Shown piece by piece: positions 1 through 59,622 of a DNA stretch of 64,000 bases. The stretch comes from Mizuhopecten yessoensis. Its lineage: Eukaryota. Within the stretch, counting starts at the first letter, position 1. Every line of letters begins with the position of its first letter. The stretch lies in contig NW_018406714.1 in assembly GCF_002113885.1 (NCBI RefSeq), forward strand, positions 90,958 through 154,957, given 5' to 3'. Position numbers and translations under genes: made by a program. A model generated the notes under the pieces. The model searched no databases, was not told the DNA's origin, and saw only the letters and a list, made by a program, of their open reading frames with translations.

Positions 1-203
1 ATTTGGCTGCCATGGCCGCTATTTTGCTACTAAGTTCTAATAGGCCGATCTCACTTAAAATTGGTCTAGGAATGATCAGCTCATGGTCCTGACAAAGTTA
101 AGTTAACATTATACTATTTTTTACTCAAATTGGTACATATTTCAACAACAAAAATAAATACTGTAGACTCAGGTGACCGTTTAGGCCCATGGGCCTCTTG
201 TTT
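1..203 (+). mobile_element. 3' end of a Helentron-associated (HINE-type) non-autonomous element
   Basis: Ends in CAGGTGACCGTTTAGGCCCATGGGCCTCTTGTTT with the perfect palindrome AGGCCCATGGGCCT (183-196), a terminal structure typical of bivalve HINEs. Confidence 0.65.
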
Positions 204-1034
204 AATTTCCCCATATATGTTATGCCACCTTCATGAGAGGATGAGCAGTTCAATTTAACCATCGTCCGTAGTCTGTTGTCGCCCTAAAAAAACTTTGTTA
301 TTGCTATTTCTCAGAAAGAACATCATGTGTGTGGCCCCTCGTTCACTTTTGAGACTGTAAACAAAACAGGCCGACAGGTGGCCGTTTTGGATTAATAAAG
401 ATAAATCGTTTTCTTGCTATTTTTCGGAAATTGATGGATATCTGTCAGCTTTGCGGGTTCCCTTTGTGTTAAAAAGTAAAGGAAAAAAGTGAAAAGATCA
501 ATTTATTTAGAATTAATGAAGATTATACACATTGGGGTTCCCTGCGGCATATAACATTTTGACTGATTGTAAGCTATGGCCTAAAGCTTGAATCGTTGGT
601 TTTTAAAGGAACAGTTTAATGAGACTATTTATTTATCTAAACTTTTGCAGCTACCTTCTAGTCTTAAACTAAACCAATTTCATTTTGGGACTAACTGAAC
701 ACTAAGACATCCGACATATCGTCATCAGACGTTCCGGAAAACGAATTTATGTTGACAAGTTTTTTGGGATATGCTGAATGGATCTTTGACAATTTTAACA
801 TAAAAAGTAGCAGTGCTTCCTTAGGCTTATCAGTTAAAATTGTGTTATCATTATAATAAAATACATTTATGGTAAAGGCGTCTTATTCATCAATTGTCTA
901 AGGGTAAAGAGAAGCCTTGAAATGAAAATATGTCGGAGAGCTAATGAGATCTTACGATGGAAGGCACGAAGGTCCGTCAAGAACCTCTTGTTATCTATTT
1001 TTGTGATAAATATGACTTTCCATTTTTCCTTAAG

Positions 1035-1234
1035 GTACATTTGACTACAAGTTGAGCGTCAATCAAACTGAAATAGAGGCTATAAAACAGCTGTGCCAAG
1101 TCCCTTTCTCCCTGGGGTGTCGGGAAGATGTGTACAGGATGCTATCCACCCAGATGTGTGAAATGAACATCCGCCATCCTTCAACCGTCGAGGAAGCATT
1201 ACATTTGTACGAAAATTTGGTAGGAAATGTTTAA
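1035..1234 (+). CDS. Terminal exon of a putative integrase-core (IS3EU-like DDE) transposase; upstream exons not identified in the window
   Basis: Acceptor TTTTCCTTAAG| at 1034; phase-1 frame GTFDYKLSVNQTEIEAIKQLCQVPFSLGCREDVYRML...HPSTVEEALHLYENLVGNV*; AATAAA at 1265-1270. The GTxDY...GC...P.T.EEA..LY..L pattern resembles the C-terminus of animal integrase-core-domain proteins (recalled, not searched). Confidence 0.55.
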
Positions 1235-3141
1235 GAACAGAGACGCATGCAGTGTGAATCATTGAATAAAAATGGAAACTATTTTGCTGTTAATTGGTGT
1301 TTATTGCCTCATGCAAAGACTTTAAATCAATCAATTTAGCTTTGATCATAATTCAAAATATAATCGAGTGCAGTACTATGACATTCCTTGTAGTACATTT
1401 ACTAACATTAAAAAAGGGCTTAACGACTTCGCCTAAATTGTACAGAAATTTACATCATTTACACCAATAATAACCCTTTTTGTCTCTCTTAAACTCGTTT
1501 AACAAGTTAACAGAATTTTTGTTATCAATAAGATTTAAATATTTCTTGTATATAGTACATTCAAAAATAGTAATGTAATATCAGTCCGTTTCATGCTAAA
1601 GTGACAGTGATAAACATCAATATTATTTAATATATGGAATATATAATTATTTACCGTAAATAATCATCATCAATGAATAGAGAAATAAATTACGATCGAA
1701 TTTGCCACTTTGTCATTAAAGTGAAGCAAATGTTAAAGAAATCGGTCTTGTAAAACTGAATGATACATGTACAAGTCTCTAAAACGAATACTAAAGACAA
1801 AGAAACACATGGATAATGTTCTCTGAGACCATTAAATAAAATTGTCACCACAGAGCAAATATACGTTGATTAGAAAGATGCTTGCCAAGACATCGGATAA
1901 AAACTTAAAGTGAATTAAAAAATGCAGCATGAATTGAAGTTATGAAAATCATGACTTTTAAATGGATTTGTCAAAAACGTTATAGGAGCTCATGGAAAAA
2001 AAGGAAGTTATTGAAGAAGAGTGAATCATCGGACTATGAAATACAATGATAGATCGGGCGTATAAAAAGACAGCATATCGACCAATGTAGTAAAATACAA
2101 TCGACAGAGTAAAATATAACCAGTAAAATAAAACAATAACATTAATAACCAAATTTAAATGAAACTTTGACTATCTTTTTAAAAGGTTATTTCTAACGGA
2201 TAAGTAGAGATTTTCAAAAGTGTTAAAACATGTAATAAAACCACCTTTTAAACAAGCATAATGTGTATTGCCTAAGCAATAAATGTCCCCTACCGACTCC
2301 AAAAGCTATAATTAGTAATGAAGATGGAAGTCTTTGGTGGTTTGCTTAAAAAGACAAAAATGTACAATTACATTGTACATGAAGATCATTAGTAACACTT
2401 GGTCAAAAACGGAGAAAGCACTGTGTCAATTGAACTTGTTCTGTAATCCTTTTCTTCAGGAAACCCTGGAGTAAAGTTTTTGTTTATAGGGTCAAATCTC
2501 AAATCAATGTCTGACGACATAGGTTTTCAGGACAAAGACAGTATCAGATGGTACATTATAAGTTCCAATGGTCATACTTAGTTGAAAATCAGTGATTAAA
2601 AGTCGAAACTTATTTACACTTCAACTGCAAATTGTAATTACACAGGCACTATCAAATCTCGTGTTATCATCTAAAGGCATAAAAAAACCCTCAAAACATA
2701 AGGTTAGACGAGCAGACAAACGAGCATAGTTCCCACCTTTCCCCTACAAAGGGGACTTATAAAACTACGAAAATGTATGTTATTCTCTAGCCATAGAATT
2801 ATGCATGGACTGAAAGGTGTCCACTATAATGCCATTTCAATTAGCGCAAGTTCTGTATTTATTTTTAAAAATCGTTCTTACTACGCCCGTGGCACTTGAA
2901 TACTTAACAGGGTTTTTATTGTCAAAGAAAAATATAAAATATGAAAACTGCCATATGAAAAACATAATTCGTAATTAAAAGGGTTGAGAAATACCTGATT
3001 TCAAAAACAAAATCAGTTAAGATGAGCAATCATATCCAAATATTATAATCTAATCTGTTTTAAAGAATTCTATATTACATAAGCAAAATCTGGAACAAAC
3101 TCAGTGAAAAAGTATCAACGGGTGATCTCATACTTCTAAGT

Positions 3142-6100
3142 TTAAACCAGGTGAAATCCACCACCCCACTGAATAGCCTTCACCATGTCTTCGCAGAAAA
3201 CGTCTGGGTCAGAGTAACCTCTCCAAATGCACAATATCAGGCCACATGTATGTGCAGTTGGAAGTTGTTTCGAGCATCCGAAGGTTACTTCTAGCTTGTT
3301 TGGGAAGCCCAGCGGAGGTACCGACGATGCTCCAGTCCAAAAAGCAAGTACTTCTTCTAACGTCACGCCAGTGGTTCCCCCTTTATCAAAAATATAACAC
3401 ATTCATTCATTTTCCCATGAGTAACGACATTTTAATAACAAATATGCGGGAATAAAGCAAGATAATACTACCTTTAACATTCTAGATTAAAATTAGATTT
3501 CACAAGACAATACAGCAAATGACAGAACTTTTATTTATTTTTTAAGTGTAACAGGTTTCTTTGTTTTTTCTCCTTTTTTATCTTTATTGTTTTACATGTG
3601 ATATTTTTATGAACTCGAAGACAAACATTAGTTGACATAAAGCACAATTTTGTTCCAAGTTATTCGAAAGTATTAGGCCTAATGGAGATGATATGTAGTT
3701 GTGCTCACAAACGAGAGATCTGTAGAATCAAATAGCATGAAGGAATGAATGAACTGTGCCTTCTTTCAATATTCAATTTTTGTCGAAGAATTCATTTAGT
3801 TTTTGTCAAAATCTTTATTTGATTGTTGGTAAACTTTATCATCATGGCAAGTTAAATTCACATTCTTTAACTTGGTTTCTCGATTTTTTTTCTGTTTGTA
3901 TTATATATATACTGTATTATCATTATCGTTATCATCATCTTGGCATTCTTTACTCGTGACAATATCATCAGATTCTGCAAACGAAGGTGAAACAAAGAAC
4001 TGATGCCTTTGTGATTAATAGACTTTATCAAAGACGCAAAAAATTATCTTACCTTCAGAATCGGCTAAAAATGCCTCGAGACAGTAAATAGCATCATTCT
4101 CCATTGTTCTGTAATTTGATCCTTCAGGACTGAAGTCGATCTTATACAGTGATCTCAATGTTGGGAACGTGAGTTTGCTATGCTGGTACGTGAAAAGGTC
4201 TTTGAATTCATCGGGTGCCAACAGAATGGTGTTGAAGAAGCACCCAACTTTATTTAATCCCTCTTGATATTGCACTATTTCTGAGTGTACACTAAAAAGA
4301 TAATTGCAAATTAGTTAACATCAGCTTCTCAAAATCTGTTTTGCCAAAAAAAAAGCTTTCTTCCAACAAAGGGTTTCAAGACGCCCGTGGACAAAACGTT
4401 AAAAAGAGGAAGAACATTTGTTTATCCTAGTTTGTCTTTTAACAAACTCGAGAGTTATATGGTGTTTAACGTTCCTTCAAAATTTCATCTTAAGTCAAAA
4501 TGGTCGTTTTCATCTATTTTTAACTCGCACTCACACTGTCTTTCATAAGATTCGGGTTGATGGTATATGCTGGTATGTGTTATCTCGTCATCATGATCTC
4601 ATTGAGAAATATTCTGTTTTCTTGTGCGATATATATAAAGTGTATGACGTTTCTATCTTGTCCTCAATTTAAGAATGTGATATAACCTATTTTACAGTTG
4701 GTGTTATAATACTTTATCAAGGTCTCCTTGTAAACCCTTCTTTTGTTCACATGTGGTCCTTTTTTCATCGATATTGAGTTTTGAATTATGATTTAGTTCG
4801 AACATTGATATTGTTTGTTTAACACCAATTACAAATAAATTGCTTCATAAATATATAACACGCAATGTACACTTGGCATAGCTTATGAACAGACAGACTG
4901 ATTTACAGAAAAAGTGATTCCAATACATCCCTCACATGCATCCTATTCCCCATCACAAACAAGCAGAAATACTCGGTACTGACAATCGACACTGTCAACT
5001 CACCGATAGTAAATTTCGTTCTTCACAAGAACTTGAAAAAGTTCGCTCTTTTTTTCAATGTGTTGGTAGCTAATGCTAAACAGCCCTTGGTCTGCACACC
5101 ATTCGCTGCAGTCATCCAATGCTTGTGTATATTCTTGTTGTGTAAGTGCTTGTTGTATCTAAGAAATAAAATAAATGTGAAAGAGGTATCAGCGAACATT
5201 CTTCAACTACAGCTAAAAAGGAAACTGAAATACCAATCAGTACGTTCCTGCATTTACACACAAAAAATAGGCCAGCAAATAATAAAAGGCGTTAATTTGT
5301 GTTGCTGTATAAGGATTCAATACTAAGTTTAAAGCTATGAAATTGATAAAAGAAGGCGTTTGCCCTGAATTTGAACTTTCTTGCAAATTTTAACATTATA
5401 GATAAAACCTGATGAAAATGATTAAAAAAGAAACAAATAAAAAAAGTGCCAAATTGGTAAGCGTCGAATTAAGATTACCGCTATAGCATGGACAGCAGGC
5501 TAATGCTATGTCGAGCCTAGGTGAAATGCCATTTTGTGTTTAGTTCCTTCATGTGTATATATATCAATTTTTGATAAATGCTTATGAATACTTACAAAGC
5601 ATAAATAACTTTCGAATGCTGGTTTCTGGTGATCGAAAACAAAAATAAAAAATAAAATCATTTAAGCAGAACGTACGAAAACAACCAAAATAAAGTCAAA
5701 CAACTACCTTTAGAAGCCTTTCCCTGACATCAAGATCAATCACACAGTTTTCAATGGCGGGGAGATTGTTTGGCTCTCTGTTCGTGAGGAAATGGTAAAG
5801 TGCCATGTTAAACACGGGAAATCCTTGTCCACCATGCAGAATAGAGAAACTTGCCAATCTGCCTGCCATTTCGTATGTTTTATACGAGAGCTTCCTGAGA
5901 TCGTGACAAAAAAAAATGCCCATCTGTAGATCCCTGCTGAATTTCGTTCTCCATGTCTTTCATCAGCAAGCTATCGGATACAAGACATAGAATGTACATT
6001 CAACTTTTGTGTCAGATTATTTCTTATAGGAACTGGTACATATACTAATATTTACATTTGGTGTGGCAAAGCCCTTCTATATTACTACTAAAGTACCGCC

Positions 6101-8375
6101 AATAACAGCTTCATCTTATGAGACTATAACTGAAGTTGGTCTTTGCACCTCCGAGCGACTTAACAGTGTCGCTACCGAACTTATCGGTATCTTCTGCTTT
6201 GATCCCTAACACCAGCTGCCTATCTCAAGTGTCTGTGAGATCAACAAACAATTTAACGCCTGGATTTTTCACCAATTCAACCTTCTCCGGTTGCACGATC
6301 AACATCAACAACAAGCCGGACCGCAAATATAACTCTGACCTGATTACTGCGGGCTTCCGTTGAGTGCGTGCGCCGGATATAGGTCGGAATAAAATCGGAA
6401 AAATGTTTTACGACACTTGATTAGTTACTTACAAAATGTCACTTGTTACTTTTTATGAATCGAGAATATGATAAATATATAAATCAAAATCAAATGAATT
6501 ATTAACGACAGTTGCGGAGTCTTTTCAATTTTGTATGGAAAATAGCGTATGACGTCTGCTGTTATATTTGTGCCGTTCTAGATACTGACCTGACCTGACG
6601 GTAGTAAGCGGGAAATTTGAAATTTGGAAAAAACATAATTTATTTTTTGCGAATTCTCATTATGGAAATATTAATATAAGCAATAGACTGCATAGATGTG
6701 GCAGACCAACTGGTATAACTGCCACATGTGTCACAGACAAACTTAACATGGTGCGCGTTACTGGTCATAACCCTCAAGACTACGGGGAGGGAAAGGAACA
6801 CATATATGTATGTGGATTTGTTTACCCATTAATATCACAAAATGAACAAAAATATAGTTTTGGTTTTATGTTGTTTAACGTCCTATCAGCAGATATTGTC
6901 ATTTAAGGAGGGACAAAAATATGAAACGTTCGAACGTTCCTTTTAATAAAATAGATCATAATATGGATATGGGCCGATAATAACCAGAACGAAGCGTTAA
7001 GGTTGTTCAATTTAACTCAATCACCAGCTGACATGTTATGGAATTCCGTGTCTTGGACAACTGTCAGTAGTTTTAATATATTGTTAAATATGTTTTCATG
7101 TATTTGTATCCACATTTCAGTGTGATACAATTATCGTTCTAAGCATTGCACTAGCAATAAATTATTATGCATTAAACATGGTCGAGCATAATAGAATTGA
7201 TATGGTGCGTAAATGAGGCTCCATATGTCAGAATATAGATGTAACAGCTTTATCATCCGGAATTGTTACACTGTTTTACAGATGGAAATGTTCTCAAAAC
7301 TCTTTTTCTTTATCGAGGTCAGGAGAAAATGCTGTTCCCCACTTTGCAGACAAAACGGACATCTCAATCCTCTGCATAGAAATTTGATACATCTGTACAT
7401 CTATATGATCTTAGGGGCATTCTAAGTATGTTTAAAGTATACAAGTGACTATAGTTTTGAAGTGTTTCCTTTCAAAGTGTTGTTAGTCTAAGGTGTTACC
7501 GGAGAAATTCACGCTTAGGACCCCCGAGGTCGTCTCCAACTTCGCCACGAAAGGTTATCTTAATTGGACGGCAACAGTTCCAGTCTTCTCTTGATACGAT
7601 CCTCATGATCGACTTAAGAATATTAGCCCGATGTATCAACATAAGGACGGGCTCGTCCGTAGTGAGAGTTTGTTTTATCCACCAAGACAAAAGACCTTTC
7701 AAAGATAAGTCCGATCTGAAAAAAATATTTACATGGGTATATAAATCGATAGGCAAATATAATGTGGGCCCCATTTTCGAGAAATACCTATTGATGACCA
7801 CATCAAAGATTGTACGAAAGACACACAAGTGAATATTACCTTTCAATACAAATTACAAATTTAGATTAGACACAGTAGAGTCAAATAATGAATTGAACTG
7901 CATCATACAGCTGTTTCGTCCTTAATCTATGAATCATCATGTCATTCTCAGGAATTTGGAAAAACAAAATCAACCATACATATTGTGTAAAGAACAATGA
8001 TGGAAAATAATGAATAAGATCCCAAAGAGAATTTTGTTTTAGCTTCGAATATGTCACGATGGCTGACATTCTGCCATACTGTTCTTTAATTCTTGTAAAA
8101 CACATCTGGACTTGGTAACTGAAACACAGAAAATTACAAAAATGGATTTCAAAGTTATGCCATCTGATGAATACTTACGGTCCAACTACACTGCCATCGT
8201 CATTATCAACATCACAGGAAGGTTCTGGTACTGTGGCGGGAGCAGCAGGCGGAGGTTCCGATGTATGAGTCGATTCCGGAGGAACCACCTCCGAGATTGT
8301 ATGTGGTGATGGCATGGATTCATCCTCATCTGAGACTTGTAAAACTGGCCGTGATCTCCGTAATCTCAGTTGATT
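3142..8375 (-). CDS. HECT-domain E3 ubiquitin ligase, G2E3-like; exons 8179-8375, 7500-7715, 5708-5970, 5004-5158, 4053-4291, 3142-3380; 5' end unresolved (candidate micro-exon 8715-8754)
   Basis: All introns GT-AG with compatible phases. HECT motifs ITFRGEVGDDLGGPKREFLR, YEMAGRLASFSILHGGQG, IDFSPEGSN, VLAFWTGASSVPPLGF, catalytic LPTAHTC, terminal GGFHLV*. Summed exon length 1309 nt = 3n+1, extra base in the A9 run at 5908-5916. Confidence 0.88.
6100..6700 (+). mobile_element. Possible 3' fragment of a Crypton-type (tyrosine recombinase) element inside a HECT intron
   Basis: ORF 6136-6363 is Ser/Thr-rich and ends GFFTNSTFSGCTININN, similar to the C-terminal F..CT.NIN tail of Crypton-family proteins; no catalytic motif visible. 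Confidence 0.4.
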
Positions 8376-9148
8376 CTATTGAAATAAATCGAACTATTCC
8401 AGGGTATTTGTGGCAAATATTCACTTATCTCTTGTGTTCATTAAGCGGAAAAGTTTCTTTTTCTGTAGATACCAATAAGCTTACATTACCAACCTGTCTC
8501 AACTTGAGTTTTTTCTTGTGAAAACAATTTTTGTCATAATGTAATAATTACCATGGCTTTAGTATGCATACTAAATGCCTACATCCATCGTTGCATCACC
8601 TTAACAAAGGATTTCAAATAATCCCGACTACCATTCTCACAGTGTTTTGGTATTACATCAACAATACAAAGATATACTCATTTTACTTAATAAAGTACAT
8701 GTATGGACTCTTACCACACGACGAAATGAAATCCTCGTCCTCCTCGGCATTTGCCTGAATAGGAGTTAAAATGAGATTAAAATTTTATCATTCTATTAGC
8801 CAATGAAAAGCAACGAACCGAAGCCGTCGGGTGTTTTTGTTATGAAATAATAAAAACGTATTTATTAGTAAGTATGTAATAAATGGATATATTCACTGGA
8901 TAACAGGGTAGTTGTGTAATAAATATGTATTTATTTGTACAATTTTAACTCTAATGACGAAAAATAAGATTTGACATATGATTATGCGACTCTCGTCAAC
9001 CTGTTCATGAAAACTTCCGTGTCGTCAAATCGATTTAACCATTTGTTACATTGTAAACTTTGAATGAATACTTTAATGGGTACAGTTTCAGGGAGCAACA
9101 TTAACATGCATGCAATTGCACATGAAACATGGTAAGGAATGCAGAAGG

Positions 9149-9305
9149 CAGGGTACGATATATACAGTGTACAAGGTAGGGTAGACAGGGTACGAGATAT
9201 ACCGTGTCCAAGGTACGGTAGACAGGGGACGATATATACAGTGTCCAAGGCACGGTAGACAGGGTACGATATATACAGTGTCCAAGGTACGGAGGACAGG
9301 GTACA
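9149..9305. repeat. 37-bp minisatellite, about 4.2 copies
   Basis: Unit CAGGGTACGATATATACAGTGTCCAAGGCACGGTAGA starting at 9149, 9186, 9223, 9260, 9297. Confidence 0.95.
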
Positions 9306-9562
9306 GATCACTGAAAACACTAAAAAGTCTATTTGGTCCATTCGTACGAGTTGTAATATTTGGTTACTTTTTCAAATTCACACCGATCCGACGACAAGGC
9401 CGGGTCCATATTACACTTTATAGATCAACTGTTGTAATATTAAATTCCAAAATATATACTTTGCCAACTCCTAGTGAAGAAATTGTTATTGAACATGTTA
9501 TAGCTTTAGAATGGCAGGGTGCATATGGATATATACACTTCTTCTTTTCTTCCATAATCTAA

Positions 9563-9873
9563 TATGGTGGTTATTATCTATGGTTTGCGCATGTGTAACA
9601 GGAAGGCGACAAGACGACAAAGCGACAAGACGACAAGTCGACAACACGACAACAAGACATTTTACCGCGACAAAACGAGATTCTGTACGCGCTAATTAGC
9701 GTGTTCAAAATGTCGTGTTGGCGTGTTGCCGCCTTGTCGCCTTGTCGTGTTGTCGCCTTGTCGCGGTTTGAAAACACAACAAGACGACATTTTGTCTATT
9801 AAATCTCGAGTTGTCGCAGCTTGTGACAAGACGACAAGACGACAACACGAGATGGCCGTAATCAGCCACCATA
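9563..9873. mobile_element. MITE with TATGG...CCATA termini (IS3EU-type) and ACGACAA subterminal repeats
   Basis: Left TATGGTGGTTATTA; right end reverse-complements to TATGGTGGCTGATTA; internal ACGACAA/TTGTCG arrays in both orientations. No matching TSD seen. Confidence 0.7.
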
Positions 9874-12800
9874 CTTATATGACATAGGCCTTCCCACTGT
9901 TATTGCACTTATTGGAGACAATATACACAAATATTTGATAATATCCATGAATGGTTTATATATTATGAACGGCATAGTGCGATGTTTTCTCTATCAAACA
10001 TGTACATCACAAGATATTTTATCAGCCCTATCGAAACATGACGCGGTGTGTTCAAGACAGGGATTGAAAGACATGTTTGTTACAAACTTGTTACACATTT
10101 AATCAATTTAGTAACGCAGTGTTTCTAATAAAGGTTTATCTAAGATAACTTTGCTATATTATTGGAGTTATTTTGTACCAGAGTGGAACCCACTTATTAT
10201 GATGTCGTTTATTATAATTTGTTCCCCATATGCCGATTTTATCCTTAAAGTAACTAAATATAAGCACAAAAATCGTTTATCATGATATGGTCCAAGGTTG
10301 GACCCCACTTATTATAATATTTGTTCTGTCGTGAATGAATTTTATAAGGTAAAAACTCAGGTAAGTTGTCCGTGTTTGACACCAGGACAATTGAACAATA
10401 GGTCGAGCTAACTGTACATCGCCCGAGGTAATTAACTGTCCACCCAAGGTAAACTTTTCACACCCCGCTTCACCCTTGTCAGTGGCAAACAATAGATCGA
10501 CCATCGATTTCTAGTCATTAATTTTGGTCTAAACAAAACATGTGCGGTAGTTAATTGCTATCTAAAATACACTGTTGGACCGTGTATCAAATGGAAATGA
10601 TAAGGCCAAACTGATTTAAATCATCTGTCACATGGCTCCGTTAACCTACCGACATTTTCTGACACAAATTCTTATAAGAAAACGAGCACGCTTTCCAGTT
10701 TTTATTCATTTGAGCAATGGATTTTCTATCTTTATTGCATTACAAGTTGATTTCCCCGTGTTTCCGTTGAAAAAGTGTCAAAATCGGGGCATGCCAGGAC
10801 GGTGCTGGAAATCGATCCATAGTTAACGTTATTGTCGTAAACAACTGACGACGACTGCTTTACTTACAATATACACCATTTTTGTTCAAAAGAATATTTG
10901 ATTATTGTTAAAAAAGAAATATTTTTCCGTTTTTAGTTGTTATTGTTTCTTTGCAATTTGATTTCACCGTACGAATTGCGAGGCATGTAATTGTCATGTG
11001 ATCGTAATTTACATAGGGCGGCAACATATTATGACGCTTATGGGCCAAAATTTAATGCAACTTCTTGGTGCAAAAAAGGTAAATTATGACTATTTATATC
11101 ACTTCTTCCATCATATTGACTGTTACATTACGATGTCGTTAGCTAGGATGAAGTATAATGATAGTTCTTGCTCGAAGTTATTTGAAAGTGAAAGTAGAAT
11201 CTACATACTGATCATTACGACGACAAAATGAAATCTTCTCGATTTTTTTCAACAAGCTGATATAAATGAAATGAAAAAATCAATTTCAATTATTACTTCA
11301 TCAATTTGTATTAACATCTTATCAGGTTTCCAAATTAATCTATGTCTGATGATTATAGAGCATCTCACTTCCGGTTCAGATAACCTAATAGTATAAACGA
11401 TCGAAAACAGCTTAATCGTTTTGTTTTTTGTAATATATCGGGGTGGGTTTTTTCTGGCAAAGAAAATAACATAATAAGATGGTTCCACTGTGCTGTTTTT
11501 TTATAATTCTGACAGAATTTCGGACTCCTGTGGTTCAAATGTTGCATGTGGTCAGGCAATAATATGTTTTAACAGAGGAAATATATTGGGCTCATATTAC
11601 CGTACTATGCCGACTGCATCATCGAGTATCTTGACGTGTGAACTGAATGCTTTTGTAAAGATTGCGTGGCAAGGTACGTACTCTGAATGAGTGAATAATA
11701 TGTGCATGTGTTCCGACATAGACAGTGTGCAATATAAATTAAACTTTAGAATGATAGTATGTATCACCCTAAGCTTGTAAAAAGCCAATATATAGTCCAC
11801 GTTTCTGACGCACTGTCACCTTGATGTTGATGTCAATATATTATGTTTGGGTTCATTGCAAGCGTCTCTGTGGAAAGATAAGCATATCCTGCCTACTGAC
11901 AGATTGCATAATAATTATATATACATTTGTTTAGACATTTTCAGCCGATACTTAGAAATTGAAGTTTTAATCCGAAAATCGTTTTTTTGCATGATGAATT
12001 AACAGGTATTTTTTTTTCTGATGAAAAATTGAAATAAATACAATTTGTTTTAGTAATATATTCGTGATTAATTCCACTCTGGCATTTTTCATGCGTAGTA
12101 AAATAAACTGGAATGGTGACACCTGTCCAAAAATCTGTATCTGCCCCTGGTCTGGTTCTGCTTTCATACTGTAATAATATGCATTTCTGCTGGTAATGTT
12201 CATATAGCGGGTTGCAGCGCAAATGTAAATATATAATTATGCATTCGAAAGTCATCTCTTTATTTATGGCAGAAGCAGAGCCAAAAGCTTCTTGAAGCAG
12301 TACTTGTGGTTGGTCTTCGGAGGGAAAATACTTTTCAGATTATTGCCAACATAGACATTAGATAAGAGTAAATATTTGTTCACATCAGTTTCAGCGAATT
12401 TAAATGGTGTTTATCCTGCATTTCAACTGAATGTTTTATGTTCGTTTTCCTAAAATGTTATATATTCAGTACTTTGATATATTAATATGTGTCTTTAATA
12501 TTAATTAAACTTTACTGGTAGCATCTGCCCTCGATTTAAGCCAGACTACGTAGACTAGCGTCTTGTATTATTGAACGCTCTTCCCAAATATCCATTGAGA
12601 ATATATCTGTAACGTGTAAACAAAACCTAATCAACAACATTTATCTCGTACCTGCATAATAACTGTACCATCAACCTTCGTATATCAACACGCTCAATAA
12701 TAAGCAAGTGGGCTCATACATGTAATTATAAATATACTCTCCATAATTAAAGGCAAAGCGACCTCACAATATTTTCATATTAAAAGCCAAGTGGCCTCAC

Positions 12801-52616: not shown

Positions 52617-52759
52617 CGGTTAAAGTATGGGATTGAGGGATATATCAAGTTTCTGGTGTCCCAAGACCAGGTATATTTCCCGAGGCGAAGCCGAGGGAAA
52701 TAGGCATGGTCAAGGGACACCAGAAACTTGCTATATCCCTCAACCCCATACTTTAACTG
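52617..52759. mobile_element. Long palindromic element with central CCCGAGGCGAAGCCGAGGG (Crypton-like non-autonomous)
   Basis: About 65-bp arms (GTTAAAGTATGGG.TTGAGGGATATA.CAAGTTTCTGGTGTCCC...) in inverted orientation; GTATAATAAAAC directly repeated on both sides. Confidence 0.75.
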
Positions 52760-57829: not shown

Positions 57830-59622
57830 TATTGCGTATGGTTGATATTCAACATTGCTCGTTGATAAGAATGATTACGGAAGGTATAGAAGGGAAATTC
57901 CTGAAAATAATAAGTCTCTATGCCAATGTAAAATGTTGTGTTACTGAATTTTTCAAATGTGATTGTGGTTTATTCCAAGGGGAAATAGTATCTTCCTTGT
58001 TGTTTACATTATTTGTTAATGATTTAGAAATGGATTTTATAAAAAAAAAAAAATTGCTTATCACTAGAAATTCAAACTATTAATTTATTTTTACTTATGT
58101 ATGCAGACGATATGGTCATACTATCGGAAACACCAGAAGACTTGCAGAAAATGTTAGATTCACTATCAGATTATTGTAGAAAATGGAGCTTAACTTTAAA
58201 TGTAGATAAAACAAAAACAGTTATCTTTAGAAATGGTGGTTTAATAAGAGCAAAAGAAAAATGGTTTTATAATAATGATGCGATTGAAGTAGTTGACGAG
58301 TTAAATTATCTTGGTCTCACTTTAAACTATAATGGAAAATTTACAAAAAAAAAACCCAAAACTTGCAGAACAAGGTCGAAAAGAACTATTTGCCATAAAT
58401 AATGTATGTAAAAAGGATTATTTTAATATAGAATCTCGTCTTGCTGTCTTTGACACGTTTGTCAATAGGATTTTAATGTAAGGTTCAGAAATTTGGGGGT
58501 TTCATAAAGCACCCGAAATAGAAAAATTGAATATTGGATTTTTGAAATCATTATTAGGATTGAAAACATCTACAAACTCTGCATTTCGTTATATTGAATT
58601 TGAAAGATCACATCTGGAGCTGTTAAGAAAAGTTAAAATGTTTAAGTATTGGATTAAATTACAACTGTGTGCTGAAAGCTTGTTATGATGATATGGTTGA
58701 AAATAAAGACCCTTGGATCCTTAACTTCAAACATGATCTTTCAAGAGTCGGCCTGGGATACATGTTTGTGGCTGATAGTATTAATCATTCTAGTGAAGTA
58801 TATAAGCAGCGATTATGTGATAGTTTTCAGCAAGATTGTCTAGAGAAAGTTCATTCTTCTTCTAAAGGAGTATTATATCAGCATTTAGTGGAAAGTATTA
58901 AATTGCAACCATATCTTCATAAGGCAATTACTTTAAATTATCTAAAACATATTTCTAAGATGCGTTTATGTGCGCATGACCTGTTCATTGAACGTGGCCG
59001 TTACAGAGATATACCTAGAGAAGAAATAAAATGTATTTTATGAAATGAAAATGATATAGAAGATGAATTTCATTTTATAATTAAATGTTATCGCTATTCT
59101 GACCTCCGATCTAAATTTATAAAGCAATATTATTTCAAAAGGCCTAGCATGTTTAAATTCGTTCAATTACTCAAAATCGAAAACACAAAAGAACTTAATA
59201 ATTTAGGAAAGTATTTATCACTAACGTTTAAACGTAGTCCAGATTTATTAAGAGGTCATCACTAGAACAGGTCATGTTAAGATACATGTTGTATATCAGT
59301 TTATTGAATACAAATTATATAATATACCATTATATTGATAAGTCTTGTCTGGGTGAATGAGGGTGAAAAAGGTTCTGGCGTGCGTATGAATGTGAATATG
59401 ATGAATGACGAATGATTGCTGCTGCTGTTGCTGATTTGATGATGATGATGATGAGGATGATGATGATGATGATGTGTGCGAGTTAGTGTGAGTGACCTTG
59501 ATGATGATGAGGATGATGTGTGCGGACATTGTGAGTGTCCTTGTGAGTGTCTTTGTCTTATCTGTAATTGCCATACGTTGTAAAACTTCAGCAAATAAAG
59601 AACTTCAAATTGAACCTTGAAC
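57830..59622 (+). mobile_element. 5'-truncated RTE-X-like LINE (RT plus C-terminal zinc motif and 3' UTR)
   Basis: GLFQGEIVSSLLFTLFVND, MYADDMV, LNVDKTK, NYLG, LFIERGRY...C...IEDEFHFIIKC..YSDLR; tail AATAAAGAACTTCAAATTGAACC at ~59594; frameshifts and stops. Confidence 0.88.
59400..59520. repeat. (GAT)n/(GCT)n compound microsatellite
   Basis: Direct inspection; produces the poly-His/Ser/Gln ORFs in the track. Confidence 0.95.

Follow-up and report, generated by a model that had tools for sequence, protein, structure and literature searches.

The first 9.9 kb of a 64,000-nt stretch of the genome of the scallop Mizuhopecten yessoensis (GCF_002113885.1, NW_018406714.1, 90,958-154,957 of the forward strand) hold the last exon of a transposase gene and a spliced gene for a HECT-type E3 ubiquitin ligase, which run toward each other. 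The stretch as a whole is called the window; in the working contig names used below it is C3387:90958-154957, plus strand. The region is very probably the right part of an inactive 22.4-kb transposon of the IS3EU/GingerRoot type, in which the ligase is an accessory gene convergent with the transposase. Sequence to the left is cited from the pieces L004 (C3387:80958-90957) and L005 (C3387:70958-80957), which together cover the 20 kb left of the window and include stretches of N at L004:7303-10000, abutting the window, and at L005:3390-7170. Scallop loci are given letters: A is the copy under study on C3387, B lies on C5470 and C on C4497.

The convergent transposase and ligase genes

The coding features of the pair are listed here. 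The seven-exon ligase model was guided by alignment to the HECT proteins of Pinctada, Magallana, Mercenaria and Patiria, with splice sites read in the sequence.

1035-1234, plus strand: last coding exon of the transposase (rva_4 / IS3-IS481-like DDE transposase); acceptor AG at 1033-1034, stop TAA at 1232-1234, 66 codons
L004:2628-2837, 4649-4744, 5996-6133, 6322-6435 and 6701-6853, plus strand: upstream transposase exons with GT-AG borders, encoding an integrase-type DDE core
About L004:1457-1537 and 2044-2127, plus strand: two more upstream exons, resembling the helix-turn-helix N-terminus of relatives
8715-8750, minus strand: ligase coding exon 1, predicted from sequence; short basic N-terminus MPRRTRISFRRV, GTAAGA donor
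8179-8375, minus strand: ligase exon 2, acidic and proline-rich, no domain recognised
7491-7715, minus strand: ligase exon 3, start of the HECT N-lobe, motif GDDLGGPKREF
5708-5970, minus strand: ligase exon 4, with a one-base frame change in a run of nine A at 5908-5916
5004-5158, minus strand: ligase exon 5, from alignment to HECT relatives, splice sites read in the sequence
4053-4291, minus strand: ligase exon 6, aligned to P0004, P0005, P0014 and P0045; GT-AG, with a border also present in five other species
3145-3380, minus strand, stop at 3142-3144: ligase exon 7, the last; catalytic Cys (AHTCG), Phe four residues from the C-terminus

The 66-codon terminal exon had been proposed, from the window alone, to be the C-terminus of an integrase-core transposase. 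The upstream exons bear this out: they encode an rva_4 protein and not an unrelated host protein. Three of them individually match Pfam PF24764 (rva_4, 'Integrase core domain'), and the motifs HVDGDDK, RMDAGTEN and RIERWW are those expected around the catalytic residues. The terminal exon is homologous to the C-terminal transposase exon of Pinctada, Patiria and locus C. Full-length transposase relatives that are linked to the same kind of ligase match rva_4 at 1e-60 and have helix-turn-helix families in front. They also match the NCBIfam models for IS481 (4e-15) and IS3 (1e-10), far below the curated cut-offs; kinship to the bacterial IS481 and IS3 transposases is weakly suggested and would be distant. 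This distant likeness is the origin of the name IS3EU. A sequence search of the PDB returned no solved structure related to the transposase.

The transposase gene of this copy is interrupted by an in-frame TAA near L004:2080 and by another in exon L004:5996-6133. A rearranged, partial copy of its 3' half, about 95% identical, is present on the 5.4-kb contig C4355 (L006 = C4355:1-5447), where the only exon translated, L006:190-327, lies outside the N stretch. This copy is free of the second stop, but Val replaces the second catalytic Asp; the family may have two copies in the genome, or C4355 may instead represent a very divergent haplotype. The transposase exons seen at locus C look intact. 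At least five introns (L004:2837-6701 and the equivalents on C5470 and C4497) sit at positions common to loci A, B and C. The transposases of Pinctada, Patiria and the ENA family described below read through these positions, which points to intron gain within a transposon gene lineage.

The minus-strand gene is a spliced HECT ligase, as the original prediction held. All seven predicted exons are bordered by GT-AG. Pfam searches used the exons singly rather than as a joined spliced protein; the last exon alone passes as HECT (PF00632, E 3e-11), and the remaining exons, which do not pass individually, are placed by alignment to complete HECT proteins from other bivalves and from a sea star. The last exon is 55-60% identical to the HECT proteins of Pinctada, Magallana and Mercenaria. 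Together the exons total 1,351 nt, or 450 codons and one base. The break in exon 4, found by three-frame translation and by alignment to P0005, is either a real frameshift or a homopolymer assembly error. The N-terminal ~80 residues are basic, then acidic and proline-rich. The ligase had been described as having no recognisable substrate-binding domain, and Pfam likewise recognises none in this copy or in the full-length relatives; in this copy HECT is the only domain recognised. Its closest solved structure is the HECT domain of UBE3A/E6AP.

The full-length ligases of complete elements have an N-terminal module in Pinctada (L019:3014-3673) and Patiria (P0045:1-350), at 32% identity. Weak beta-grasp-like structural matches in an Atlas search and a motif resembling the ubiquitin-interacting motif (UIM) are leads only, and Pfam finds nothing beyond a weak UIM in the N-terminal ligase regions. 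The scallop ligase copies are without this module.

The stop codons at 1232-1234 and 3142-3144 face each other across 1,907 nt, in line with the predicted spacing of about 1.9 kb. Opposed poly(A) signals had also been proposed between the genes. Both candidate hexamers exist, AATAAA at 1265 on the plus strand and TTTATT at 1300, which is AATAAA on the minus strand. The assignment of the second to the ligase is doubtful and was rejected, because two minus-strand AATAAA hexamers, at 2858 and 2915, lie much closer to the ligase stop.

Ends of the element and the insertion site

The features that delimit the element are as follows.

C3387:78438-100830 (G000): whole element, 22,393 bp, with terminal inverted repeats, 6-bp duplication and a paralogous empty site
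Window 1-9873: right-hand 9.9 kb of the element; the left 12.5 kb lie upstream of the window
L005:7481-7812: left terminal repeat, 332 bp, an inverted match to the right repeat
9558-9873: right terminal repeat, 316 bp, internally palindromic, with short CGACAAG-type subrepeats; outer end ...GTAATCAGCCACCATA
L005:7475-7480 and 9874-9879: left and right copies of the target-site duplication CTTATA, perfect over 6 bp

The element reads TATGGTGG...CCACCATA from end to end. Its terminal repeats are inverted, 88% identical over 332 bp, with arms 21.7 kb apart, and they form the sole long inverted repeat in the 45 kb around the genes. Their outer 20 nt match at 20/20 positions and start with TATGG (TATGGTGGCTGATTACGGCC). 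A scan that required TAYGG...CCRTA ends, a match at 14 or more of the 20 terminal bases and a match at five or more of the six flank bases returned exactly one pair at this locus and one in Pinctada, and zero in five other loci of 20-60 kb. The right flank belongs to an older repeat family, and a member of it on contig C5377 (L035:976-1210) extends across the insertion point; this paralogous empty site has the left flank, a single hexamer (CATACA) and the right flank. Since the outer flanks are CTTATA and the empty site has one hexamer, the 22,393 bp were inserted as one piece, duplicating six bases. The repeat unit is low-copy, with at least about ten places in 988 Mb, which makes a chance meeting of two units within 22 kb unlikely.

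These results bear on two earlier proposals. Terminal inverted repeats and a 6-bp duplication, suggested as a check on the transposon idea, do bound the gene pair. The TAYGG-ended element that had been noticed upstream of the ligase is real, at 9558-9873; it is not a separate miniature inverted-repeat transposable element (MITE) but the right terminal repeat. A bystander MITE was rejected, as the outer pair of ends has the duplication and the single units have none: neither repeat unit, taken singly, has matching flanks of its own. This copy of the element is dead, with two stops in the transposase and a one-base frame break (or assembly error) in the ligase.

The surroundings of the element contain further repeats. 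Window positions 9923-10300 belong to an older dispersed repeat family of at least 40 copies, about 80% identical, and the element is inserted in one member. Beside the N stretch on the left, L005:7180-7455 (C3387:78137-78412) forms the end part of a young repeat, of which the genome has several other copies at 100% identity. It stops 25 bp before the left end of the element, and the old repeat was therefore struck by two separate insertions.

Recurrence of the gene pair and its mobility

Whole-genome Pfam scans place rva_4 and G2E3-like HECT matches 3-22 kb apart on nine scallop contigs (C3387, C5470, C4497, C5364, C1335, C2252, C3327, C5106 and C5220), convergent in every case. The pairs on C2252, C3327, C5106, C5220 and C5364 are known from match coordinates alone. 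Genome totals are at most 97 rva_4 and at most 71 HECT matches in 988 Mb, from which about 0.4 pairs within 25 kb are expected by chance. The last exon of the ligase matches only three places in the genome, each facing an rva_4 gene. Locus B has stops and frame breaks, with decay in both genes; locus C, found via a transposase search, has a facing, more distant HECT gene.

Ligase relatives were gathered by exhaustive search, and their neighbours were examined for an integrase; one further relative sits on a contig too short for a judgement.

P0005 (Pinctada imbricata), P0014 (Mercenaria mercenaria) and P0045 (Patiria miniata): in each, an rva_4 gene in convergent orientation, 1.5-5.5 kb downstream
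P0095, an ENA assembly: two genes without introns, convergent and separated by 437 bp
P0143, Onychostoma macrolepis (carp): convergent integrase with no gene call, found by tblastn
P0117 and P0152, Triplophysa tibetana (loach): helix-turn-helix, rva_4 and HECT in one gene model

A conserved convergent linkage of HECT and integrase genes, raised by the original prediction as something to look for, is thus found on nine contigs here and in four other species, and in an altered form in a fifth.

Mobility of this two-gene layout is seen in other animals, where several copies each have a 6-bp duplication of their own. A complete Pinctada element (L019:310-19374) has the ends TACGG...CCGTA and the duplication GTAACC. 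Its terminal repeats (TACGGAAGC...), about 500 bp long, consist of short tandem units; one of them contains the transposase start codon, 17 bp in, and ligase exon 1 starts just inside the other. The ENA family is smaller, at 6.3 kb, with 235-bp repeats (TATGAGGTGCC...) and the ends TATGA...TCATA. Three copies, 97-99% identical, occupy different sites with the duplications GTCGGA, GCTATA and TTCTTA. Because each of these near-identical copies has its own duplication, the two-gene unit transposes.

In Triplophysa tibetana, CM017917.1 (L039:10001-20629, L022) holds several copies, at least 90% identical, with models of 863-864 amino acids. These could be a real fusion of transposase and ligase or merged gene models. 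Two of the copies are alike across the whole 28 kb, a segmental duplication in an NLR (FISNA-NACHT) cluster, and the Triplophysa copies are therefore uninformative on element borders; their searches also gave no convincing terminal repeats or duplications.

Origin of the pair and role of the ligase

Several observations weigh against reading the locus as a single two-gene transposon. No ends or duplications were found at scallop loci B, C and D or at the Patiria and Mercenaria copies; two end hits from a relaxed search over these and the Triplophysa loci were low-complexity and were discarded. Locus A is nearer B in its ligase and nearer C in its transposase. The empty site is paralogous, about 83% identical, and not allelic. 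One full copy of the family was found in the genome; beyond it there are the partial copy on C4355, at ~95% identity, and about ten solo units. The terminal repeats are themselves whole MITE-like units, each with both ends, so that the structure also resembles two MITEs joined in a composite. Between pairs of six elements, ligase and transposase identities increase together (Spearman 0.70), which fits joint inheritance; the test is weak, with a Mantel p of ~0.08.

The first alternative takes up the structure of the ends. Two IS3EU MITEs would flank a host gene pair and have been moved as a composite by a transposase acting in trans, the ligase and perhaps the integrase being captured host DNA. 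Both terminal repeats do have TATGGTGG at their two ends, solo units of the same length occur on C69115, C54200 and C1340, and full copies of the family are very few. The same convergent genes, however, fill elements whose repeats are unrelated (those of Pinctada and the ENA family), the Pinctada transposase begins within a terminal repeat, and an integrase of the kind enclosed here is just what would be expected to act on TAYGG ends and leave 6-bp duplications. A composite origin is accordingly improbable.

It is also quite improbable that the pair is a host module retained for some cellular role, in which a domesticated integrase-derived gene and a HECT ligase gene stay side by side and the repeats and the hexamer match are incidental. 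Such a module would suit the several introns of both genes at positions common to loci A, B and C, the wide occurrence of the pair in animals, including RefSeq models such as those of Mercenaria and Patiria, and the loach models that join both domains in one protein within a segmentally duplicated NLR cluster. Yet both genes are broken by stops and frame breaks in this copy and at locus B, the pair occurs at many unlinked places, the duplication and the paralogous empty site indicate insertion as a unit, and three near-identical copies elsewhere each have their own duplication. The idea that an ordinary G2E3-like host ligase lies by chance beside an unrelated decayed integrase, which has in its favour that both gene families are many-membered in this genome and nothing further, conflicts with the way the pair recurs (all nine co-located pairs convergent against ~0.4 co-locations expected within 25 kb, and a convergent integrase next door to the nearest ligase relatives in the five further species judged) and can be practically dismissed.

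For an active two-gene transposon of this kind, a general scheme can be proposed. (i) Both genes would be transcribed toward each other from near the two terminal repeats. (ii) The transposase, judged by its family, would bind the subrepeats of the terminal repeats, cut the DNA and join it, leaving a 6-bp staggered repair. (iii) The ligase would act as an accessory factor of transposition, ubiquitinating a protein to the benefit of the element. We infer that the ligase is an active enzyme serving the element, because the catalytic Cys is kept in all ten ligase copies compared, at 33-60% pairwise identity over the domain, and because its gene keeps the same place and direction in elements whose ends are unrelated. 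The chances are about even that it targets a host protein involved in holding the element in check or in reacting to the breaks, through silencing, DNA-damage or apoptosis signalling. Control of the level of the transposase itself is a less likely role.

In IS3EU elements the ends are TA..TA, which in fungal families take the form TAYGG..CCRTA, the duplications measure 6 bp and some families have passenger genes; GingerRoot elements have 6-bp duplications and terminal repeats of 100-150 bp; and homologues are reported from oyster, fish and cnidarians (PMC10045372, PMC12730594, PMC6839031). The element shares with both groups an integrase or IS3-IS481-type DDE transposase that lacks an HHCC finger and whose relatives have a helix-turn-helix N-terminus, the TA...TA (TAYGG...CCRTA) ends, the 6-bp duplication and terminal inverted repeats of tens to hundreds of base pairs. 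It differs in its HECT gene, in terminal repeats that are whole palindromic MITE-like units of ~320 bp, and, in the scallop A, B and C lineage, in a transposase gene with at least five introns. Fungal IS3EU families carry genes for TET/JBP dioxygenases and alpha-kinases (Kojima 2025, PMC12730594). Order and orientation of these passengers with respect to the transposase are fixed, and their proposed function is to help the element evade host control (PMC12730594). Superfamily, TAYGG..CCRTA ends, 6-bp duplication and fixed passenger orientation are common to those families and the elements described here, whereas the passenger here is a ubiquitin ligase rather than a demethylase or kinase, and the hosts are molluscs, an echinoderm and fishes.

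Enzymes that strip off ubiquitin or SUMO, or that erase DNA methylation, are known passengers of transposons, and viruses widely use E3 ligases against host defences. OTU domains occur in Ginger1 and Helentrons, and ULP1 in some MULEs and CACTA elements. In these cases too the element brings its own enzyme of the ubiquitin/SUMO system; theirs, however, are modifier-removing proteases, whereas the enzyme here is an attaching ligase, encoded by a separate convergent gene rather than forming part of the transposase. The literature searched contains no description of a HECT gene in IS3EU/GingerRoot elements or of an E3 ubiquitin ligase in any eukaryotic DNA transposon, although a brief Repbase record is possible. 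A transposon-borne E3 ligase would be a new kind of passenger and would offer a simple system for studying how mobile DNA copes with surveillance by the host and with its own damage. The intact 6.3-kb ENA copies provide a compact version for testing the proposed role of the ligase.

The HECT domain is of the G2E3-like kind, and the relatives in Mercenaria, Magallana and Clarias are annotated 'G2E3-like'. Unlike G2E3, neither the N-terminal exons of this copy nor the full-length relatives have N-terminal PHD/RING-like zinc fingers in Pfam searches, and the genes are present at many unlinked sites, mostly next to a transposase gene and in some cases enclosed by terminal repeats and target duplications. 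Many genes of molluscs, echinoderms and fishes named 'G2/M phase-specific E3 ubiquitin-protein ligase-like' may thus be transposon genes and not cell-cycle genes. The original suggestion that G2E3-like genes, numerous in aquatic animals, may be cargo of transposons is supported at the loci examined and is a conjecture beyond them. More tentatively, HECT-bearing IS3EU/GingerRoot elements could form an old, animal-wide lineage (bivalves, echinoderms, fishes and probably more) that explains much of the G2E3-like expansion, with the ligase as a manipulator of host ubiquitin that, for example, blunts silencing or the DNA-damage/apoptosis response, and with the two genes merged in some fishes.

The window was also said to contain more MITEs of the same kind. 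It has only two or three other TAYGG-ended inverted-repeat candidates, all short and none with a target duplication, and no second copy of the TAYGG-ended repeat family, so the statement stands only weakly. Candidates at 52626-52750 and 57837-58913 have TATGG ends, but their 6-bp flanks do not match; perhaps they are remnants of unrelated IS3EU-type MITEs. A GGTAC-rich minisatellite with units of ~40 bp lies at 9120-9300, between ligase exon 1 and the right terminal repeat, and a similar-looking minisatellite array occupies L005:1756-2489, outside the element, some 6 kb beyond its left end.

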